A DNA stretch of 63,134 nt, filler included, from Pelomyxa schiedti (taxonomy: Eukaryota; Protista; Evosea): the NCBI GenBank assembly GCA_020536535.1. It is 12 parts of 12 records of this genome, joined end to end, with 100 filler letters (N's around TTAATTAATTAA, not from the genome) between each part and the next. Parts side by side here need not be neighbours in the genome. Positions count along the whole stretch, not along the records: positions 7,721 to 17,328 come from JAHLWZ010001291.1; 11 more parts are not named here. One strand, written 5' to 3'. Of this stretch, positions 7,721-44,728 are shown in pieces. Within the stretch, counting starts at the first letter, position 1. Each line of letters begins with the position of its first letter. A program made the position numbers and the translations under genes. The notes beneath the pieces were generated by a model that was given only the letters and a program-made list of their open reading frames with translations, searched no databases and was not told the origin of the DNA.

Positions 7721-8336
7721 ATTTCCAATCAATATTTCTACCAGGGAGAATCTAAGTTTCACCAGTTTTGCAATGCAAATTCGTGGTAAGAGAGACCCAA
7801 TCAATGAAAAACGAAACGCTGTGCACGTGGAAGCAGAACACCTGAGGTTGTTGAAACGAAAGCTCCACACCCATTGGACAAGCAATTAAAAATTATTATC
7901 CCCCCTCACATCAAAAAAGGGGAAAAAAAAAAAAAGCCGTTCCCTCCGCCACAACAACCTCCTCCTCGTGATTCGTCGCGGCTGCTATGACTAGTAGCCA
8001 CATCACTCCATCAACACCTGTTAATAAATACACTCGCCGCACCATACGCCGCCGACGACGATCGACGCGCCTTTGTTAGTCCCTCCTCTTATGGAGTCGT
8101 ATCTCCGATTTGATTCTTTCTTTCACCTTTGATTGTTTCTACTCACACTTTTTGTGTGGTTAACGGTCACCGCAGCAACTCCTTTATCTCGTGTCTTCAC
8201 CTCAGTGTAGTGAGTGGGGTGGATGAGTGAGTCATTTCGGTCCCCATTTGTCTGCAGACTGCCCAAAAAAAGATTTTAGGCATACACACGAGACGAAAAC
8301 GATTCGTGTTGCACGAAGTCTGTGTCACAGGCCATC

Positions 8337-9540
8337 ATGACAAGTGAGTTTCAGGTCGGCCCTGTTGATGTGTTGGCCAGCACCACCGTCCGAGACCAGA
8401 TGGGCGCCCTGGCCGCTGCGGCCACGGTCGGGCGGTGCGGGGCGGGGAGCCCCATGGTGGCCGCCATGGGCCGCGGCCACGCCGCCTGGCTCGTCCGCTC
8501 CCTGTGGTCCGACCTCGTCCGCCCCACCCTGCGCCTGTTTGTGGTCGACGTGACAGGGGTGTGCCTGCGGGGCCCAGACACCGCCCGCAGGGTGCCCCAC
8601 GGCGCCTCCTTCCGGCTCTCCCCGCTGCTCCTGGGCGTAGCCTGCGGCCCTCGGCTTCCCCCCACCCCCTATGGGACTACTCGCGTTGGCCCCGGCAGTA
8701 TCTCGCTGTGGCTGCACCGCGGCCGAGGGATGCTTGCCGTCTGCGACCTGCTGGCCAACTCCATGCCCAGAAGGGAGGCCGTGCCCGTGACCAATGCACC
8801 GTGGGATGGCCACGTGGTCGGATCCAGGTGGGCAGCTGCTGTCGGGAGAACAAGGAATACAGTGGCATCAGCCAAGGCACCGAGGTGAGCTTGACTGTTG
8901 CAGAGATGATTCGCGGGGTGGCTGTGTCTGCTGGCGGTTGCCTTTGTGGTTGCGGCGATGACGAGGACCTTGGATACACTGTTGTTGTGGGTGTGCCGCA
9001 GTTCGCGGGCAGTGAGGGCCGAGTGCAAATGTTCCCGGACCAGTCAGTCGAGAGCGAGGTCATTGTCACTCACTCCACGGCCAACCGCACCCTGATTCTG
9101 GTTGTTGATGTGGAGCAGACAACAGCAGGAGCCTGGCTGTGCTAAGCACAACGAGGTGTGAGTTCCCCCCGGGCTACTTGTTTCAGTATCTCGTTGTGAT
9201 GAGGAACTGGGGCCAGTGTTCTTCTTCACCTTTTGGGTCGCACACGTTCATTGTCACAACGCATTTCAAGCGTTCATTTTATGAAGTGTTCCGTGTGCAG
9301 GAACACACTGCCATTTTGATGCCAATCATGCGCCACGTGTCTGGTGTCTTCAGTCAGTCCGACTCTCTGTTCTGTCTCTCATTCTATGCCAAGAAACTGC
9401 GGGATTATTTCCATCTCTACCACTTTGGGACCAAACTCACCCACATGACATTGCTCAGTCCTTCCCATACCCCAAGTCCTGCAAGCGAGTCAAAGCGAAA
9501 AGGTTCCTGGCAAAGTCTGGGCTCATGTTCCGAGTGTTAG
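8337..9540 (+). pseudogene. Member of the expanded 'QxxA..RCG.SP..LW' family, apparently frameshifted
   Basis: VRDQMGALAAAATVGRCGAGSP...LW motif; similarity continues across three different frames (8322, 8435, 9139 ORFs). Confidence 0.55.
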
Positions 9541-9772
9541 TCAGCAACGTCATTGAGGTTATTGAGCCAAAAACTGGGTTTCTGTGCCTCACAATCGGTT
9601 TCAAGTCAATCGAGGTTCCAACAACACCCTTCTCCTGTTGGGTGTATTGATTGTTCTCGCTTTTTCTTGGTACTGGTGTGCATCACACAACAGCACCATA
9701 AGGAACACCTCCGAGTGAGTACTAGAACCCGAGTAACTGGACATGTACAAACAGATGAAAAAAGAAAATTAG

Positions 9773-9844
9773 TGGCCCCGCTCAGAATCGAACTGAGATC
9801 AAGAGAGCCAAAATCTCCCATACTAACCATTATACTACGGAGCC
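9773..9844 (-). tRNA. tRNA-Gln(TTG)
   Basis: Reverse complement is identical to the copy at 3144-3215. Confidence 0.93.
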
Positions 9845-9946
9845 TCTGCCTGTTCTTGTCTCTCAAGTTGACGGCGCCTAGAACACCTTGGATAAGGCAC
9901 AAACAGTTGAATGGGCCCTCGTTTCTGCGGGCGGTCCTTCAGAAAT

Positions 9947-10036
9947 GCTCTGGTAGCTCAGTTGGTTAGAGCGCGGTACTTATAAGAACAGTATTGAGTC
10001 ATGCTGAGGTCGTGGGTTCGATCCCCACCCGGAGCA
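9947..10036 (+). tRNA. tRNA-Ile(TAT) with 16-nt intron
   Basis: GCTCTGG/CCGGAGC acceptor stem; CTTATA then intron AGAACAGTATTGAGTC at the canonical 37/38 site; GTGGG-TTCGATC-CCCAC T arm; T-run after. Confidence 0.92.
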
Positions 10037-10542
10037 TAATTTTTTGTGGAGTTCGGTGTTGGTGTTCCAAATGTTGGATTCTCTATTCACGGTTGATTAT
10101 GAATCAATGCGGGATCAATGAGACACAGATAAGACAGTATCAACAGCCTGCTATGAGCATGAATGGTTGATACGAGAAGAGAAGAAAAACCAGTTCGGCT
10201 TTCCGGCGCTGGATATTTGACAAAGTAGTTGCCCAGAATCAGCAGCGATCACATCACCTGTGGATAGCATAACACTTCCAAGTGGCTCATACTGGCTGGT
10301 TTCCAAAAAGATAGAATCTTCCTTGAAAGTTGCCATGAACGCCCTCAGTCCGATGTTGTCCGTGGCAATGTACGGCTTGTTGCTCACTTCCCCGAGGTAG
10401 TTGTGGGACCTATGTGTGCTTGCGTTAATAGGAAGTGGAAGACAAGTGAGAAAGGGTGGCAACCGTGATAACACTGTTACAAGTGAATCGGTTTGCTTGA
10501 TATAGGCAATAACTTCGCCGGTCATATTGGCACAGCAGGATG

Positions 10543-12951
10543 TTATCCCACCATCGGGTGTAACTGGGTAATGTTGAGTTTCATAAATAGTAGTGGGCAG
10601 GCATCATTACCTTGGGGCACAAAGTAAGCTCTGGGTGAGTTATCAAATGAGACAATAAGTGTTGCGTCTGCAGGAGGCTCCGTCATAAGAGTATCTGCGG
10701 AACAGGGGGCCAATGTAGTGAGACTCCTCCTGGTGTGGCGCCGGAATGGGTTCGCCCAATTGGAGGAGGAGATGAGAGGCTGTGCGGGTGGGGGAACGGA
10801 AGAGAATTCTGGAATTGCTCTGTGAGGGAAGAAGAAAAATAAGAGAGCGACTCCGAAATCAAGAAAAGCGGTGCATGCGAGCATGCCCCACATGATGCGG
10901 AATCCTCTTGTAGTTGGCCAAATTTCAGTGTTATCAGCACATGAAGAGGCGCTGCTTCCCGACCCATTGCTGCAGCTGCCTGTTGTTGAAACGACTTCCA
11001 CAGAGTTCTGGTCCATAACAGCGTTTATCAAAATCGGGCCCAGTGCTTGCCCAAAGAAACGTACACATTGCAGAAAACTCATTGCTGCCGGGTAGTACTT
11101 CTCTGGAACAAAGTGCCTATTATGATAATTAATCATATGTTAAAATTATTTATATTAGTGTGATAAGATTTGAACTGCAACACACAACGAACGCACCCAA
11201 GTGCAGAAACCGCAGGGATACTTGCAAATACAAATGCAGCACCGAGGAAAGCCTCCAGCACGGCAGTCAGCCAGACTGTGCAAACAGGCATGAAAAGAAG
11301 AAATAGTACGCCAAGAGCAAGTGCACCCAAGGCAAGCATCAGAACCACCCACGTCTTTCTCTTTGACAGCTTTGCCACAACAAATCCGAACACAATGTAC
11401 TCAAGGGGAACAATGCTCATAAGAAGCCCGGCTTTCCACGCCTCTTCAATCCCCAAGCCATTGGTTGGAGACCCTGGAGGGGCCTCAATGAAGAATGGCA
11501 TGAGTTGGTAAAACGCATTCGATGACAGAGCAGATAAAGTTCCAACTGTAAAAGGTGGTGAGTTCAGAAAAGAATCAAAGATAGAGAAAACGAACTTGCG
11601 GAAATGACCATCATTGATGGTCCCAATAAGACAACCATAGAGAGCAGAACAGCCTTGTTTTGGTATTCTCTTCCAAGCTCCCAAATGGCAAAAGACCAAC
11701 AGAGGCATGCACTCAGTAAAAATCCAAATATGGTCGACACTGAAGACCAACCCCACACATCTCCTTCAGTGATGGAGAGCATCAAGAAAAGAGATGAGAT
11801 GCCAAGTTGAAGACACCCCAGCCAATCGATGTGGGCTTCCTGGGAATACATAGGGTTGTTAAGCTTGCATTGGGGGAAAATCAGCAAGGCGGTAGTACCT
11901 TCTTTACATTGGACAGAGGCATCACTTTCTCGCACTTTGGTAACAAAGATATCAGCAGCAAACCGAGCGGAATGAGGATACAAAAGGCAACAACAAAAAA
12001 GAGATAGTGCCAGTCCATTACTGACACCAAGATGCCACCAAGTATCAATCCCACAGCAATGCCCGTGCCACCCATTGAGAATACAATCGCATCCGACCCT
12101 GGAGGGCCATACTCCCGTGCATCAGACAGAGCAACGCAAGCCATTCCGGCACAGCCACCCTGTTAAGGTTAAGCCAATTAGAAACTGAACCGCGAGGAGA
12201 GAGCCACATGCCTGCAGGAATCTGCACACTATGAGGAAGAAAATATTCGGTGAGAAACCGGCAGCAACGGTGGAGATGAAGTAGAATATTAGAGTTCCAA
12301 TCATCACGTTCTTGTTGCCAAACTGCCTCCCCAGCTGAACCAGGACTGGCACTGTCACAACCCCGCTCATCATGAATCCAGACTGAACCCATCCTTTTTT
12401 TTTAATTAAAAAAATCAAACATATATTTACTTTATGCAAATTACACTGCCAAATCCGCAAACAAAAAAATGCATAAAACCAACAAACGCCACGGGCAGCA
12501 TACAACAAAAAGGACGAGGACGAGAACATACCGACGTACTCGAGGCCCCACTCGTTTGCTATCTCAGGTGTGGCCGACACAAGCATCAGCTCCTGCGACA
12601 TCATGAGCACGTTCAAGCACGCCAGCACCATCACGTGCGCCGTGTTGAGCTTCATCGTCGTCGCCGTGGCCGTGGCCGTCGGCGGCGGCGCGGCGCCCCC
12701 TCCTCCTCGCTCGGTCTCTTTCTCTCCCGCATTGCCCTGTCCCTGTACTTGCCCTTCCCCGGGCCCTTGCCCATTCCCTTTCCCATTCCCATCCCCTCGC
12801 GGGGCAGTGGGGACCCCGCGCGGGCGCAGGGGGTGCCGCCTGCTGGTGCTGATGCAGGCGCCCCTCCCAACAGCAGCGGGGACTGCTCGTCGTCGTCGTG
12901 GTGGTCCCCCACTTGCTGGGTGCCCCGCTCGGCGTGGTGGCTCGTGGACAT
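10543..12951 (-). CDS. MFS transporter (drug:H+ antiporter-like, probably 14-TMS), multi-intron
   Basis: LVSATPEIANEW, QLGRQFGNKNV (motif-A-like), LIVCRFLQACG, GLILGGILV, IDWLG and FFGQALG; many TM segments; N-terminal EQSPLL is in a different frame from the ATG at 12655; may extend to 10151. Confidence 0.8.
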
Positions 12952-13506: not shown

Positions 13507-16500
13507 ATGAACAGTCCCAGTTTTACCCCTTGCCTACGAGGCCAAGAAAATTCGCAAGAACAACGAAATTCGTCACCGGCCGACGGAAGCGCTGCCGTAT
13601 CTACATCGGCGCCACCTCCCATACATCGCAGCCGTAGGATCGCGTTGTGCTCAGGATTCAACGAGGACACCGACGTCTCGAAGTGGCTGCTCGACAAACT
13701 CGCGGGGTGGTCGGCGGCGTCGCCGGGGATTGTGGGACCGTGGATCCGCGGAGTGTGCGATGGGATGTCGCGCACGGTGAACAAACCCATAACGATGAAC
13801 CGGCTGTGCGACGCGGTGGGTGCCGATGCCGATGCGTTCTTTAGGCCATACGGCTCCATCTCGAGGAAATACGATCCCCACTCGTGGTATGTGCCAACAA
13901 CGCAATATATAGCACGCGAAATTGTGGGATTGGGAAATTTTGTGAAGATTATTTTTCGTTGTGGATTTGTCCTTTTGCTTTTTGTGGCGACCAACAACAA
14001 AAATAAATAATAATAGATAACACACACTTCTAATCACCTTAACTTTGTTGAAATAAAATAATATTATTACTAATTGCTTTAAAAAGGGTTCATGAGCGAG
14101 AGAGCCGGCCACCAAAAAGCCTTCTTGGGATGACTTTATTTTGCGTCCCACTGCAAACGATATATTCGTGTGCTTGTTTTCTCATTTCTGCTCTTGGACA
14201 AGGCTCCACTGATGAGGATGACCCCGATGGCAACAAGAGATTCTTTGCTTTTGCAAGGTCATTTGATGTCTGTGTGGGTTATTCTGCTGGACAAATACCT
14301 ACGTCTGCCATCCTCAAAGCAGGTTCCACATAATCCCTTTTCCAACGTGGGGAATGCTACCGTTTTCTCTAAAATGCATTCTGCAGATTCGGTGGCCCAA
14401 TTTCAAGCCATGTGCTTGGATTGTGTCAGAAGAGGATTTCGTTTGACCCTTGCAATCCTTGAGGAACACAACAAACAGTGGGGGAAAGAAGTGATGTCCA
14501 AGAGTTGGATGTGCATGTTCAAGGTTCCAGTTGCCATGCTTGAGAAGTACATTGAAGCTGTGAATTCCGAGTTCCCCTCCACACCACTTTTTGTGTCGAT
14601 CAGGTTGACACCCACCCAGTCAGTTGTCTCTGGTTTGTACCACCACTTGATTCTTTATCCCTCTGCCATTCACTGATTCGTTGGTTTCCAGGTCACCCGA
14701 CTCCTCTGGCCAAACTTCAGAGTCTTTTTCCTCCACATCAAGTAAAAGTTCTGCCAGTGTCGGAGGGCTTCCATGCACCGTTTTATCAATCTGAAGCTTT
14801 GAATCTATTCCTTGGCCGCATCCCACCCACAAAGTATCCCCTCTGGAATCCTGTTCCAAACAGTGCCGCCTCTTTCAGCACGAGTTTAAATGCGGACACA
14901 TCCCAGGTTGTTCACGCCTTCCCTCCCTCTTGATCTGGTTGACAATTAACATATGTTGTGTTGTGAAGTGGGACACACATCGTTATTGCGATCAAGTTCA
15001 CGTGGACTCAATGGGACTCCCTATCAATTGGCCAGAAACTGTCAAGTGAATTTTCCCTTCTAGTTCGCTTCCAACACATGAACAGAGCGATTCTATCCCA
15101 CAACAGAGGATGCGATGCAGTCGAGATATTTGATTTTGGACCACCAGGTGTTGGTTTTTTAACTCACGCCTTATGCTCGTCTGTGTTCAAGAAGAAGTCC
15201 ACCCTAATCAACTGCGGCACTGCTCATGACGACCCCCGTAAGGTGCCTCCCTCAACACAGTCATCAACCGGACCTTTGAGGACGAAAATTGACACAGAGA
15301 CTCTGACACCAATGGAGAGAAAGGTTCTCGAGATTTGGTGCGAGGTCCTCCCATCACAACCATCATCGATCGATGAGGACTTCTTCGAGGCTGGTGGTGA
15401 CTCAATCGGAATGCTCAAGGCAATTGCATCCGCTGACAAACGGGGGTTGAGCCTCAACCTCAGCGATTTGTTTGCATCCAGAACAATCAGGTCAATGGCA
15501 TCTCTCCTCACATCAACCAACTCGGCAACAAAGTTCAAGTTCCCACCAATCAAGCCCTTGTCAGCATCAACGTCGAGCAAAAAGGTTGCACCACTGTCAC
15601 TGACGCAACACAGGCTGTTCTTCTTGGATCAGCTCCAACCGAACTCAGTTCAGTACTCTGTCTTTGGTGGTGCCCATTTGTTTGGACATCTTGATGGTGG
15701 CGCAATGCTGAAGGCAGCACTCTCTGTTGTGATTCGACACGAGAGCCTCCGCACAAGGTTCGTGACAGAACACGAGGAAGAAGCAACATCAACAACATCC
15801 CAAGGGTTTCAGTTGATCCTCCCTGTGCAGGATGCTGACCACGCAATCCAGTTCCGCGAAGTGCAATACATCAGACCAACCGAAAGCCTTTGCTGTTACG
15901 GTACCGAGGAAGCAAAACAGAAGTGGCTCAATGGTGAATTCCAAAAGGAAGTGAGCACTCCGTTTGACTTGAAATCAGGGCCCCTTCTGCGGCTCACCCT
16001 GTTCCGACTTGACGAAGAAGAGACCGTTCTTTTCGTCATTGCGCACCACATCATCACTGATGGGTGGTCAATGGTTGTTTTCACAAGGGAGCTCTCTCTC
16101 CAATACAACCGCGTGGTGGTGTCTTCACCCTCACTACCACAGCTCATTGAGCAACAGTTGAAAAATGGCAACAAAGCTGAGAAGATCGCAGCAGCTCCTA
16201 AACAAATCCCACCAGAACCACCTGCACTGGCGTTTCAGTTTTCTGACTTTGCAGTTTGGCAAAGGGAACTGCTCCTCAACACTTCCAACAACCTGAAAGA
16301 GAAGCAGCTCTTGTTCTGGAAGAAGGAACTTGAGGGAGTCAATCAAGTTTGCGAACTTCCGCTCGACAGGCCAAGGACTGACAACCGAACTTATTCCGCT
16401 GGATTCCACATCCACATGATCCCACCGTCACTGTTTTCGGCGTTGACAACACTGGGAAAGAGCATGAGCACAGCCACACCGTTCATGACAGTTCTCACTG

Positions 16501-17328
16501 TGTTCAACATCCTTTTGCACCTTCACAGTCCAAGGTGGTCCAAAACAGACAAAGAGGCCACCACAGCACCACCATCCAATCCACAAGGTGACATCGTTGT
16601 TGGGATTCCAACAGCGAACAGGCATTACCCTGGGGTAGAATCTCTGATTGGGTTCTTCGTGAACACACTCCCCATCAGAACCACCATTGAGGAATCAAAA
16701 TCGTTCAAGGAAACACTGGAGTCAGTGAAAAGCAAGGTTCTTTCTGCACAAGAGGCACAGGATGTACCATTGGACTGGATTGTTGACACTGTTGGAATCG
16801 AGCCAAGGCTGAGCATGCACACACTCGTTCAAGTCAGCTTCGTGATGGATGACTGGAAGTTCGTGGACAATAAGAACTTCACCATGGAAGGAATCAGAGA
16901 CGTGAAGCTTCTTTACAACATCCACCCCGTCATGTCCAAGTTCGATCTCACCCTCAATGCTGTTCCACAGAGCGACGGTTCCCTTGAGCTCCAGTTCGAG
17001 TTCGCCAAGGATATCCTTGATGACTCAACAGTGGTCAGATTCGCAAACAACATGGAGACTCTCATGAAGAGTGTTGTGTCCTGCCCTGACAAGCCCATCT
17101 CTCAGTTGAATTGCATTCATGAGTCGGAGACCAAGAGCCTGACAGTGTGGCATTCCACAGAGAAGGTGTTCAACACCACAACCACAGAAGAAACGAGAAA
17201 AGCAGTTCACTTCCTGTTCGAGGAGTCCGTCACAAAGCATGGAAATCTCCCAGCCTTGATGTTTGGGAATGAAACAGTGAGTTATGATGAACTCAACAAA
17301 CAAGCAAACCAACTTGCACACTTCCTCA
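13507..17328 (+). CDS. Hybrid starter-acyltransferase-NRPS (AT-T-C-A..., truncated at contig end)
   Basis: Removing introns 13887-14086, 14323-14386, 14633-14691, 14907-14968 and 15046-15085 gives one open frame with GYSAG (14277-14291), SVVSGHP, VLPVSEGFHAPF, LPINWPET, IFDFGPP, carrier DFFEAGGDSI, C domain HHIITDG (16044-16064), LIGFFVNTLP and A1 motif SYDELNKQANQLAHFL. Confidence 0.85.
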
Positions 17329-42919: not shown

Positions 42920-43789
42920 TCAGTCCACGGACAAAGTAGCAAGAGCGACATCAGTGGCCCCATCACAAAAAAGCATTTTTGTTGCTGATGTCACTTGCTC
43001 CACTTTCCAGACAACAATTCCACAGTGCGACTGGACTGCATCCAGGGACACCACACACCCCTCGTGAGATTGGTGCAAACCATGGTGTCTTCCACTGACG
43101 GGACTCACCAGGCACACTGTGTTGAGGTTATCAGTGCTGTACACGTCCATGATGGAATAATGCGGTTGCTCTGCATGCATTGCGCCGATGTTCCTGTCTC
43201 CAATAGCGCGAACTCCAAGGACATTATCGTAGTGGTGACTCTCGCCTGTTGTGCTGTTGAAAGCCCAGGTACTTGACATTACACATACAGGCTCTGCTGC
43301 TGTTATACCCGTCACAACTATGTTCTCCGGAATTGGTACTTCTTTGGATACAACCAGAGACTTCTTCCCTCGCTTCATTGTTTCTTCCAGGTCAATGTGC
43401 CACAAGTCAAAATGCCCACCAAATTCAGCCGGTGGTACGCAGCACAACAAGACATTGGGATTATCACGGGAGAACGAGAGGCAGGTCTGAGAACCCCTTT
43501 CAAATCGATGGTCTATGAAGACTGTTGGTGCTTGTGTTGCTGTTCTTATTTCATTCCCCTCTTTCCCTATTACAACACCATCCTTGACCTTCCACACATG
43601 CAGTGAAAAAGGAAAGGAAAGAACCACCCAGTGGGAGTTGCAACAGGCTCCAAAAGAGGTTTTGAACGTAACCTGATACAGAATGCTGAACACTTTCCCA
43701 GAGTGATCAACAATGCCAGCCCAACAGCCGTTCCTGGCTGAGAATGTGGTGACCACAAACCTGTCATAGCCAATACATCCGCGCACATA
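42920..43789 (-). CDS. Expanded-family gene C, copy 1, 3' part
   Basis: Near-identical to the C-terminal part of 46109-47353. Confidence 0.75.
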   Translation of the reverse strand, partial: YVRGCIGYDRFVVTTFSARNGCWAGIVDHSGKVFSILYQVTFKTSFGACCNSHWVVLSFPFSLHVWKVKDGVVIGKEGNEIRTATQAPTVFIDHRFERGSQTCLSFSRDNPNVLLCCVPPAEFGGHFDLWHIDLEETMKRGKKSLVVSKEVPIPENIVVTGITAAEPVCVMSSTWAFNSTTGESHHYDNVLGVRAIGDRNIGAMHAEQPHYSIMDVYSTDNLNTVCLVSPVSGRHHGLHQSHEGCVVSLDAVQSHCGIVVWKVEQVTSATKMLFCDGATDVALATLSVD

Positions 43790-43950
43790 NNNNNNNNNNN
43801 NNNNNNNNNNNNNNNNNNNNNNNNNNNNNNNNNNNNNNNNNNNNNNNNNNNNNNNNNNNNNNNNNNNNNNNNNNNNNNNNNNNNNNNNNATGAAATGCAA
43901 CACCAGAAGCAAGATATATTCACCACACCCAGTGTAAGTGACACACTCAC

Positions 43951-44728
43951 TCAGCACTGACAGTGTGTTGGTTGCGTAGGTCATAGCAACGTCAACAAAC
44001 AAGAGGATCAAGTGATGCCAGGGATCCCTGAGCACCAAGAGGGCTTCATCTGGAACCTCCTTGTCAAATGAAATCAAAACACACTCCGTGCCCTTGGCAA
44101 AGTCAACTTCCAGCCGCTTCACAATGCTGCTGCTTCTGGTGTCATTTTCCACCACTCCATCACCACCATGGTCGTTCAATTTGGCCAGACTAAACATGCC
44201 TCCTCCAAATTGATTGTAGTACATCCACCACTTGTGGTTGCCATTGTGCAGCGAGCCTCCAGTGCTGAGCTGCTCAGCGAACAGCAGGTTATCTTCATCC
44301 GTGACGAGGTTGAACAAGCTGAATCTCGAGACTCCAAATTCCTCCCCTTCAAGCGCCAGTTTTGAAATGACGTGGTGATCTGGAAGGAACGCAGTCAGTC
44401 TTGGGAACTCTGAGTCGCTCCATCTGTTGAGAACCTTGATTCCAGATGTGACACTGTTAAGTGCCGTTGAGATCCCGATGGTGAAATAACTCCGCACGAA
44501 TCGGCCGGTCACGACCAACGCACCAAAAACGACCTCAGAGTCGCGGAGGCACAAGTCCCACAGTTGCATGGGCGCTTGTGGCACAAAGTGGCGTGCGGGG
44601 CTCGCGGCACCACACCGATTGTGGGACGCCATCACCAATGCGAGCAGCTGCTCGTGTGCTCGGAGCCCCGTTGTGGATGTTGGTATGTCATCATAATCAA
44701 CCTCGTTGTTGACTCCGTGTCGTTTCAT
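43951..44728 (-). CDS. Expanded-family gene A, copy 2, 5' part
   Basis: RAHEQLLALVMASHNRCGAASP...LWD; ends at an inverted junction near 43950. Confidence 0.75.

Follow-up and report, generated by a model that had tools for sequence, protein, structure and literature searches.

An expressed nonribosomal peptide synthetase gene with an N-terminal SAT-type acyltransferase domain in Pelomyxa schiedti

The window analysed here is a stretch of 63,134 nucleotides joined from contig parts of the archamoeba Pelomyxa schiedti (GCA_020536535.1), and the locus of interest lies at 13507–17328, on contig C1291 (JAHLWZ010001291.1) of the genome searched (52,367,397 bases, 5,337 contigs). At this locus lies the 5′ portion of a nuclear, expressed gene for a nonribosomal peptide synthetase (NRPS), encoding in order a starter acyltransferase (SAT), a first carrier (T0), a condensation (C) domain and the start of an adenylation (A) domain. 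The N-terminal domain is supported as a starter acyltransferase of the type found in fungal fatty acid synthase (FAS) beta and in polyketide synthases of the non-reducing kind (NR-PKSs), with a Ser-His dyad and without the malonyl-binding Arg. The individual domains are all known; their combination was not found outside Pelomyxa in limited searches. The SAT would probably transacylate an acyl starter onto holo-T0, and condensation of this starter with the module 1 amino acid by the C domain would begin an N-acyl peptide.

Gene structure and splicing

An initial annotation, made from the DNA alone, had proposed that five GT-AG introns join separate reading frames into one. Exon 1 (13507–13886, like all features of this gene on the + strand) has a putative start codon at 13507 and encodes an unconserved N-terminus of ~40 residues, with SAT conservation from ~13633. 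Intron 1 (13887–14086; 200 nt, phase 2) has 30% GC and stops in all three frames. Exon 2 (14087–14322) encodes the SAT core, including the nucleophile motif GYSAG (Ser codon at 14283–14285), and is followed by intron 2 (14323–14386; 64 nt, phase 1). Exon 3 (14387–14632) encodes a SAT helix, in which a Leu occupies the Ile306/malonyl-Arg position considered below, and then a ferredoxin-like subdomain. After intron 3 (14633–14691; 59 nt, phase 1), exon 4 (14692–14906) carries the catalytic His in the motif EGFH (14772–14774); after intron 4 (14907–14968; 62 nt, phase 0), exon 5 (14969–15045) encodes a C-terminal part of the SAT with the motif LPINW. Intron 5 (15046–15085; 40 nt, phase 2) precedes exon 6 (15086–17328), which begins with the last SAT strands (15086–15221, IFDFGP at 15126) and runs on through T, C and the start of A. 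All five introns have GT-AG ends. Read in the phase passed on from the exon before (2, 1, 1, 0 and 2 at the five junctions), none of the six exons contains a stop, nor does any codon split by an intron form one.

RNA contigs removed introns 3, 4 and 5 at their exact GT..AG ends (introns 3 and 4 in runs X1 and X3, intron 5 in runs X1 and X2). For intron 2, an RNA contig of a paralogue of about 90% likeness skipped a net 64 nt (83 skipped, 19 replaced). No RNA contig covered intron 1; its ends (GTATGT..AG) were kept in six copies of 121–252 nt, with interiors of 35–54% identity outside the near-identical copy. Introns 1, 4 and 5 were unspliced in run X4, a run of unrecorded kind, probably of DNA. 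In close paralogues all five introns held their ends while the interiors drifted in length and sequence, and the same five positions recurred in the distant paralogues on contigs C150, C151 and C753 as well as in NCBI's independent model of C150. In fully covered exons, nearly every indel relative to paralogues had a length divisible by three, and substitutions were biased to third codon positions. All five introns are thus real, at the proposed positions. Certain RNA contigs were identical to the window copy, with zero mismatches, indicating that either this copy or its near-identical twin on C1593 is transcribed.

The intron-5 RNA junction put SAT exon 5 and the carrier/condensation exon 6 in one transcript. 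As exon 6 holds the last strands of the acyltransferase together with T, C and A, this junction makes the locus one gene, as the initial annotation had it, rather than one whose transcripts end before about 15000; independent public models of fused paralogues agree. The public model of the window locus, KAH3731929.1, wrongly takes an ATG within intron 5 as its start and lacks the N-terminal SAT. That model would fit two genes, one for a SAT by itself and one for a T-C-A NRPS, and a stand-alone SAT does occur on contig C573; a bacterial contaminant might be suggested by the nearest T-C relatives outside Pelomyxa, which are bacterial NRPSs. Both ideas are highly improbable and are largely refuted: the exon 5–exon 6 junction was found in RNA contigs of two runs, three public paralogue models are fused, the introns are spliceosomal and the neighbours eukaryotic, and the bacterial relatives reach only 28–35% identity, none of them with a SAT, and the Pelomyxa C domains form a long-branched clade of their own.

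Identity of the SAT and of the domains downstream

The SAT exons of the window were too short to score alone. They were searched singly, and the whole-domain profile tests rested on paralogues, namely the natural single exon of C424 (L016:8409–9044), a copy without introns 2 and 3, and NCBI paralogue proteins. Against PF16073 (SAT; curated cut-off 22.8 bits), the C424 exon scored 47 bits and public paralogue models 36.2 and 29.1 bits; window exon 3 alone reached 15.1 bits (E 0.018), and the ~80%-identical paralogue KAH3731327.1 carries PF16073. SAT was the sole family matched by all five members of the alignment, and language-model features gave 0.97 to a SAT cluster. In a search of a SAT-family profile against the PDB, the SAT of CTB1 and FAS-beta ranked first, weakly (E 0.03–0.05); single-sequence PDB searches with the SAT returned nothing, and a single-sequence fold of the C424 SAT exon had a predicted local distance difference test score (pLDDT) of 37. 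PF00698 (malonyl-CoA:ACP transacylase) gave zero matches at E up to 1. No match to PF08354 exceeded the cut-off in the genome, a search that introns limit.

An AlphaFold model of KAH3731327.1 (~80% identical by exon) was compared with known structures. It matched the FAS-beta acetyltransferase 7q5s_B (residues 165–548) with Z 26.0 over 324 aligned residues (rmsd 3.3), followed by yeast FAS (Z 23.3), PksA SAT (21.3), mycobacterial FAS (20.1), CTB1 (19.6) and CazM (19.4), so that the top six were all FAS acyltransferases or SATs. Matches of the malonyl/acyltransferase (MAT)/FabD type had Z of at most 18.6, and PksD, an acyl-hydrolase acyltransferase, had 16.8. Sequence identity in these structural alignments was just 8–19%. 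The profile scores, the features and the fold bear out the FAS-beta/SAT assignment of the initial annotation, and the N-terminal motifs that it quoted are present, with the catalytic Ser and His retained.

The nucleophile and the His were kept in every paralogue examined, down to ~30% identity, the nucleophile being Ser or Cys; that on C259 has Cys (GYCGG). NR-PKS SATs use a Cys nucleophile in the motif GxCxG (PMC8582187). Yeast FAS-beta has Ile306 where other transferases have the malonyl-binding Arg (PMC5353594). In a gapless alignment to FAS-beta, this position held Leu in the window; the paralogues had Met, Asn, Thr or Leu there, and none had Arg. These residues would fit non-malonyl starters, which may differ among paralogues. 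With PF00698 unmatched, the malonyl Arg absent and MAT/FabD structures ranking lower by Z, a malonyl-transacylase identity was rejected.

Downstream of the SAT, T0 (15318–15509, +) matched PF00550 (E 6e-12) with its Ser in GGDS at 15402–15404, and the LCL-like C domain (15582–17141, +) matched PF00668 (E 1e-69) with an intact HHxxxDG (His at 16047–16049). The A domain (17217–17328, +) matched PF00501 (E 4e-4) and is cut by the contig end after about 40 residues, covering the first 37 AMP-binding positions; it goes on in copies C1593 and C1674 and is complete in paralogues. The proposed single frame from acyltransferase through T and C thus stands, while for A it extends over this short start only. 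With C, A and T in one polypeptide (A incomplete in the window but whole in paralogues) and HHxxxDG and the carrier Ser intact, the locus qualifies as an NRPS; the ER, DH and MPT domains that follow the acyltransferase in fungal-type FAS beta are replaced by T-C-A. The Asp235-type FD motif was kept in all paralogue A domains, whose substrate codes are too divergent to assign. The copy on C1593 (99% identical) is without ~139 nt at the C-domain end (window ~17001–17141; L002 around 470) and its frame is shifted; it may be a broken copy or an amplification or assembly artefact.

Against the PDB, the C domain gave E-values of 1e-52 to 1e-32 to Txo2/Txo1, DhbF and TycC, which we take to be elongation (LCL) domains, and of 4e-9 to CDA-C1 and 2e-4 to 7c1h, presumably starter C domains. 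By sequence it appears to be an elongation-type rather than a starter C domain. C domains of the elongation type need a carrier-bound donor. Lipoinitiation by a starter C was rejected, as the C domain does not stand at the N-terminus and its PDB scores group it with elongation domains. No AMP-binding match was found upstream of T0, where loading by a fatty acyl-AMP ligase (FAAL) through FAAL-ACP-C (ACP, acyl carrier protein) would place one. The domain evidence thus agrees with a route unlike starter-C or FAAL loading, as had been suggested, and the loading chemistry would be that of the SAT.

In a quick tree of C domains, built without labelled subtype references, 11 of the 12 from Pelomyxa formed one long-branched clade (SH-aLRT 100), and the divergent twelfth, from C1181, sat unplaced on a long branch. 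The clade argues for an old acquisition and expansion within the lineage, with no donor nameable. The C domains that follow SAT-T0, in hybrids and N-terminal copies alike, formed a subclade (SH-aLRT 99).

The SAT family and the source of the acyl group

SAT exons matched 13 contigs of the genome in three settings: N-terminal, stand-alone and internal. N-terminal copies were found at the window locus and on C1593, C1674, C1508, C150, C259 (SAT-T-C-A-T-C...) and C424, where the gene is an apparently complete SAT-T-C-A-T-C-A-T-reductase with an intron inside T0. Contigs C1840, C484, C4396 and C4256 were fragments with SAT exons alone. Stand-alone SAT models lie on C573, Pelo_7205 and Pelo_7190 (KAH3760971.1 and KAH3760956.1): a gene at 43000–44600, annotated as hypothetical, and another, shorter model of that scaffold. 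Internal SATs were found in two polyketide synthase (PKS)-SAT-NRPS hybrids. On C151 (L029:3875 to L011:6465), one frame stays open over 2,300 codons and encodes the C-terminus of a ketosynthase (KS), AT, DH, MT, ER, KR, ACP and SAT exon 1, and the remaining SAT exons and then T-C-A lie downstream; the PKS of this hybrid is a full, highly reducing one. On C753 (L009), a KS lies upstream and an ACP-like tail is in frame with SAT exon 1, followed by T-C-A-T-C-A-T; its upstream PKS is known from these two features alone. The last domain is a carrier in the genes on C753, C1181 and C1326 and a reductase in that on C424. In the three SAT-fused public NRPS paralogue models, the SAT is already marked by precomputed Pfam hits.

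Other NRPS genes or fragments were present on C1181, C123, C318, C1326, C2062, C48, C202 and C693. C1181 begins inside an A domain and may continue a SAT-NRPS; in several of these further genes or fragments the last domain is a bare carrier or a C domain, and C1326 has an inverted duplicate. The A domain of C151 recurs with an identical score at the scaffold start (57–1154), suggesting a wrapped or duplicated assembly. Across the whole genome, ketosynthase matches numbered 39 and lay on 17 contigs; the genome paper (PMC8887013) is silent on this large set of PKSs.

Phosphopantetheinyl transferase (PPTase) genes were found in the genome. In the proposed mechanism, a PPTase would prime T0; the SAT Ser would take a non-malonyl acyl group and pass it to the T0 phosphopantetheine; the A domain would load an alpha-amino acid onto the next carrier; and the C domain would join acyl-T0 and aminoacyl-T1 into an N-acyl amino acid, to be extended by later modules. 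The product would then be released, for which paralogue C424 offers a terminal reductase, and perhaps exported by a neighbouring transporter. For the window copy, acyl-CoA is slightly the likelier donor, on a nearly even balance; the FAS-beta-like fold and the lack of an adjacent PKS would fit it.

The two PKS-SAT-NRPS hybrids raise another source, in that the donor may be ACP-bound rather than acyl-CoA. The SAT would then hand over a polyketide or fatty-acyl chain from the ACP of a separate PKS to the NRPS, and the N-terminal copies would be split hybrids. The continuous PKS-to-SAT frame of C151, the in-frame ACP-like tail of C753, the single clade of first C domains from both kinds of copy and the many other KS loci in the genome point that way, and there is precedent in NR-PKS SATs that take chains from highly reducing PKSs (HR-PKSs) or HexA/B (PMC3901194, PMC11026467). 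No PKS adjoins the window copy, however, and the closest fold, the FAS-beta acetyltransferase, is that of an acetyl-CoA user; this source is possible, though rather unlikely. In a wider proposal, also tentative but somewhat less doubtful, SAT-T0 would be a mobile acyl-loading cassette and a PKS-NRPS interface not described before, passing a finished, reduced polyketide from a PKS ACP to a dedicated NRPS carrier; the hybrids would do so in cis, copies like that of the window in trans.

Transacylation by the SAT itself would be lost if the domain were a vestige, had a structural role such as dimerisation, or acted as a hydrolase in proofreading, with T0 loaded in trans by a ligase, as in T0-C-A NRPSs of the echinocandin type. 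NRPSs that start with T0 and are loaded in trans exist (PMC6518819), SATs may dimerise (PMC11026467), and acyl-hydrolase acyltransferases share the fold, as the PksD match illustrates. Against this stand the conserved Ser/Cys and His, the third-position bias and the frame-keeping indels, and we regard such a role as quite unlikely.

Several points weigh against loading by the SAT and condensation by the NRPS as set out above. The 3′ end of the gene was not found: a continuing contig was looked for, and no contig of the genome carries the rest. The RNA evidence consists of contigs from one sample of one study, some of them from paralogues. The structural model is a moderate one (pLDDT 70, with residues 299–354 poor) of a paralogue, and direct sequence E-values to the PDB are weak.

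Neighbourhood and relation to known systems

An intron-containing gene of the major facilitator superfamily (MFS; PF07690) lies at 10543–12951 (−, ends approximate), ~550 bp upstream of the SAT-NRPS gene and divergently transcribed; no PKS gene lies beside the window copy. The nearest copy of this MFS gene, 67–97% identical by exon, stands head-to-head with the SAT-NRPS gene of C259, whose SAT is just 36–51% identical by exon, which argues that the pair was kept together. This suggests the MFS neighbour as a candidate exporter of the product. Farther out are a tRNA-Gln(TTG) at 9772–9844 (−), a tRNA-Leu(AAG) of 92 nt at 9946–10037 (+), which probably contains an intron, and, just downstream of the MFS gene at 10151–10525 (−), a 124-residue open reading frame (ORF) with no match in the compared loci. 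A GC-rich segment (66–72%) at 8320–9150, where ORFs of the two strands overlap, differs from the sequence around it and is possibly a repeat element.

The Pelomyxa SAT resembles the acyltransferase of fungal FAS-beta and the NR-PKS SATs (PksA, CTB1, CazM; PF16073) in fold, motif order, Ser/Cys-His dyad, lack of the malonyl Arg and N-terminal position. Those domains feed an ACP or KS, whereas the Pelomyxa SAT stands directly before a carrier and an NRPS C domain. By analogy, the Pelomyxa enzyme would come closest in its working to fungal lipopeptide NRPSs of the T0-C-A order, among them EasA of emericellamide (with EasD/EasC as loaders), EcdA of echinocandin and that of verlamelin; in these, a first carrier that has no A domain receives an acyl group, to which the first amino acid is then joined (PMC6518819, PMC3901194). 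In the fungal enzymes loading happens in trans, through a ligase, the stand-alone acyltransferase EasC or both, whereas in Pelomyxa the transferase is fused in cis and belongs to the SAT family. Systems with a bacterial starter C (SrfAA, CDA, RzmA) or FAAL-ACP-C share with it the predicted N-acylated peptide, but the Pelomyxa C domain is elongation-like and no FAAL precedes the carrier. In bacterial AT-ACP loading modules, an acyl group passes from carrier to C domain, for example from EpoA to EpoB. The EpoA-type loading AT is of the modular-PKS MAT type, whereas that of Pelomyxa is of the FAS-I starter type. The C151 hybrid has the PKS order of fungal HR-PKS-NRPS hybrids (KS-AT-DH-MT-ER-KR-ACP-C-A-T-R) with an extra SAT-T0 between ACP and C, and on C753, unlike in those hybrids, several NRPS modules follow.

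Relatives of the SAT outside Pelomyxa were sought by sequence among 1.84 billion representatives, a word-indexed protein set, bacterial genomes and metagenomes, and plasmids, and none was found (one other hit was an unrelated repeat protein); these searches are blind below ~25% identity and were no architecture query, and absence elsewhere is unproven. Searched together by Atlas, SAT-T-C gave a best value of 0.77, which was uninformative. The literature searched held no description of SAT-T-C-A or PKS-SAT-NRPS, the one AT-ACP-C-A hit being a terminal KS-AT-ACP-C-A module. In the searchable literature no paper linked Pelomyxa to NRPSs, and the genome paper (PMC8887013) names neither NRPSs nor polyketides. 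Within these limits, the initial view of the architecture as an unrecognised one holds.

The public gene model KAH3731929.1 needs correcting. The gene places a SAT domain outside FAS and NR-PKSs, the sole settings given in the reviews consulted, and offers a candidate further route to N-acylated nonribosomal peptides, by a cis-fused FAS-type starter transferase; the other routes are starter-C, FAAL-ACP and loading of T0 in trans. The SAT-T0 didomain is of small size and open to direct assay, and natural paralogues that differ in their pocket residues provide a series for starter specificity. For Pelomyxa, the loci reveal an expanded, intron-bearing and transcribed PKS/NRPS set in an anaerobic free-living archamoeba, and they suggest a manner of beginning acylated peptides that has not been described before, in a group from which such compounds are not known. 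If the cassette proposal is true, the diversified SAT pockets would imply a family of lipopeptides or lipopeptide aldehydes in an anaerobic amoeba with prokaryotic endosymbionts.

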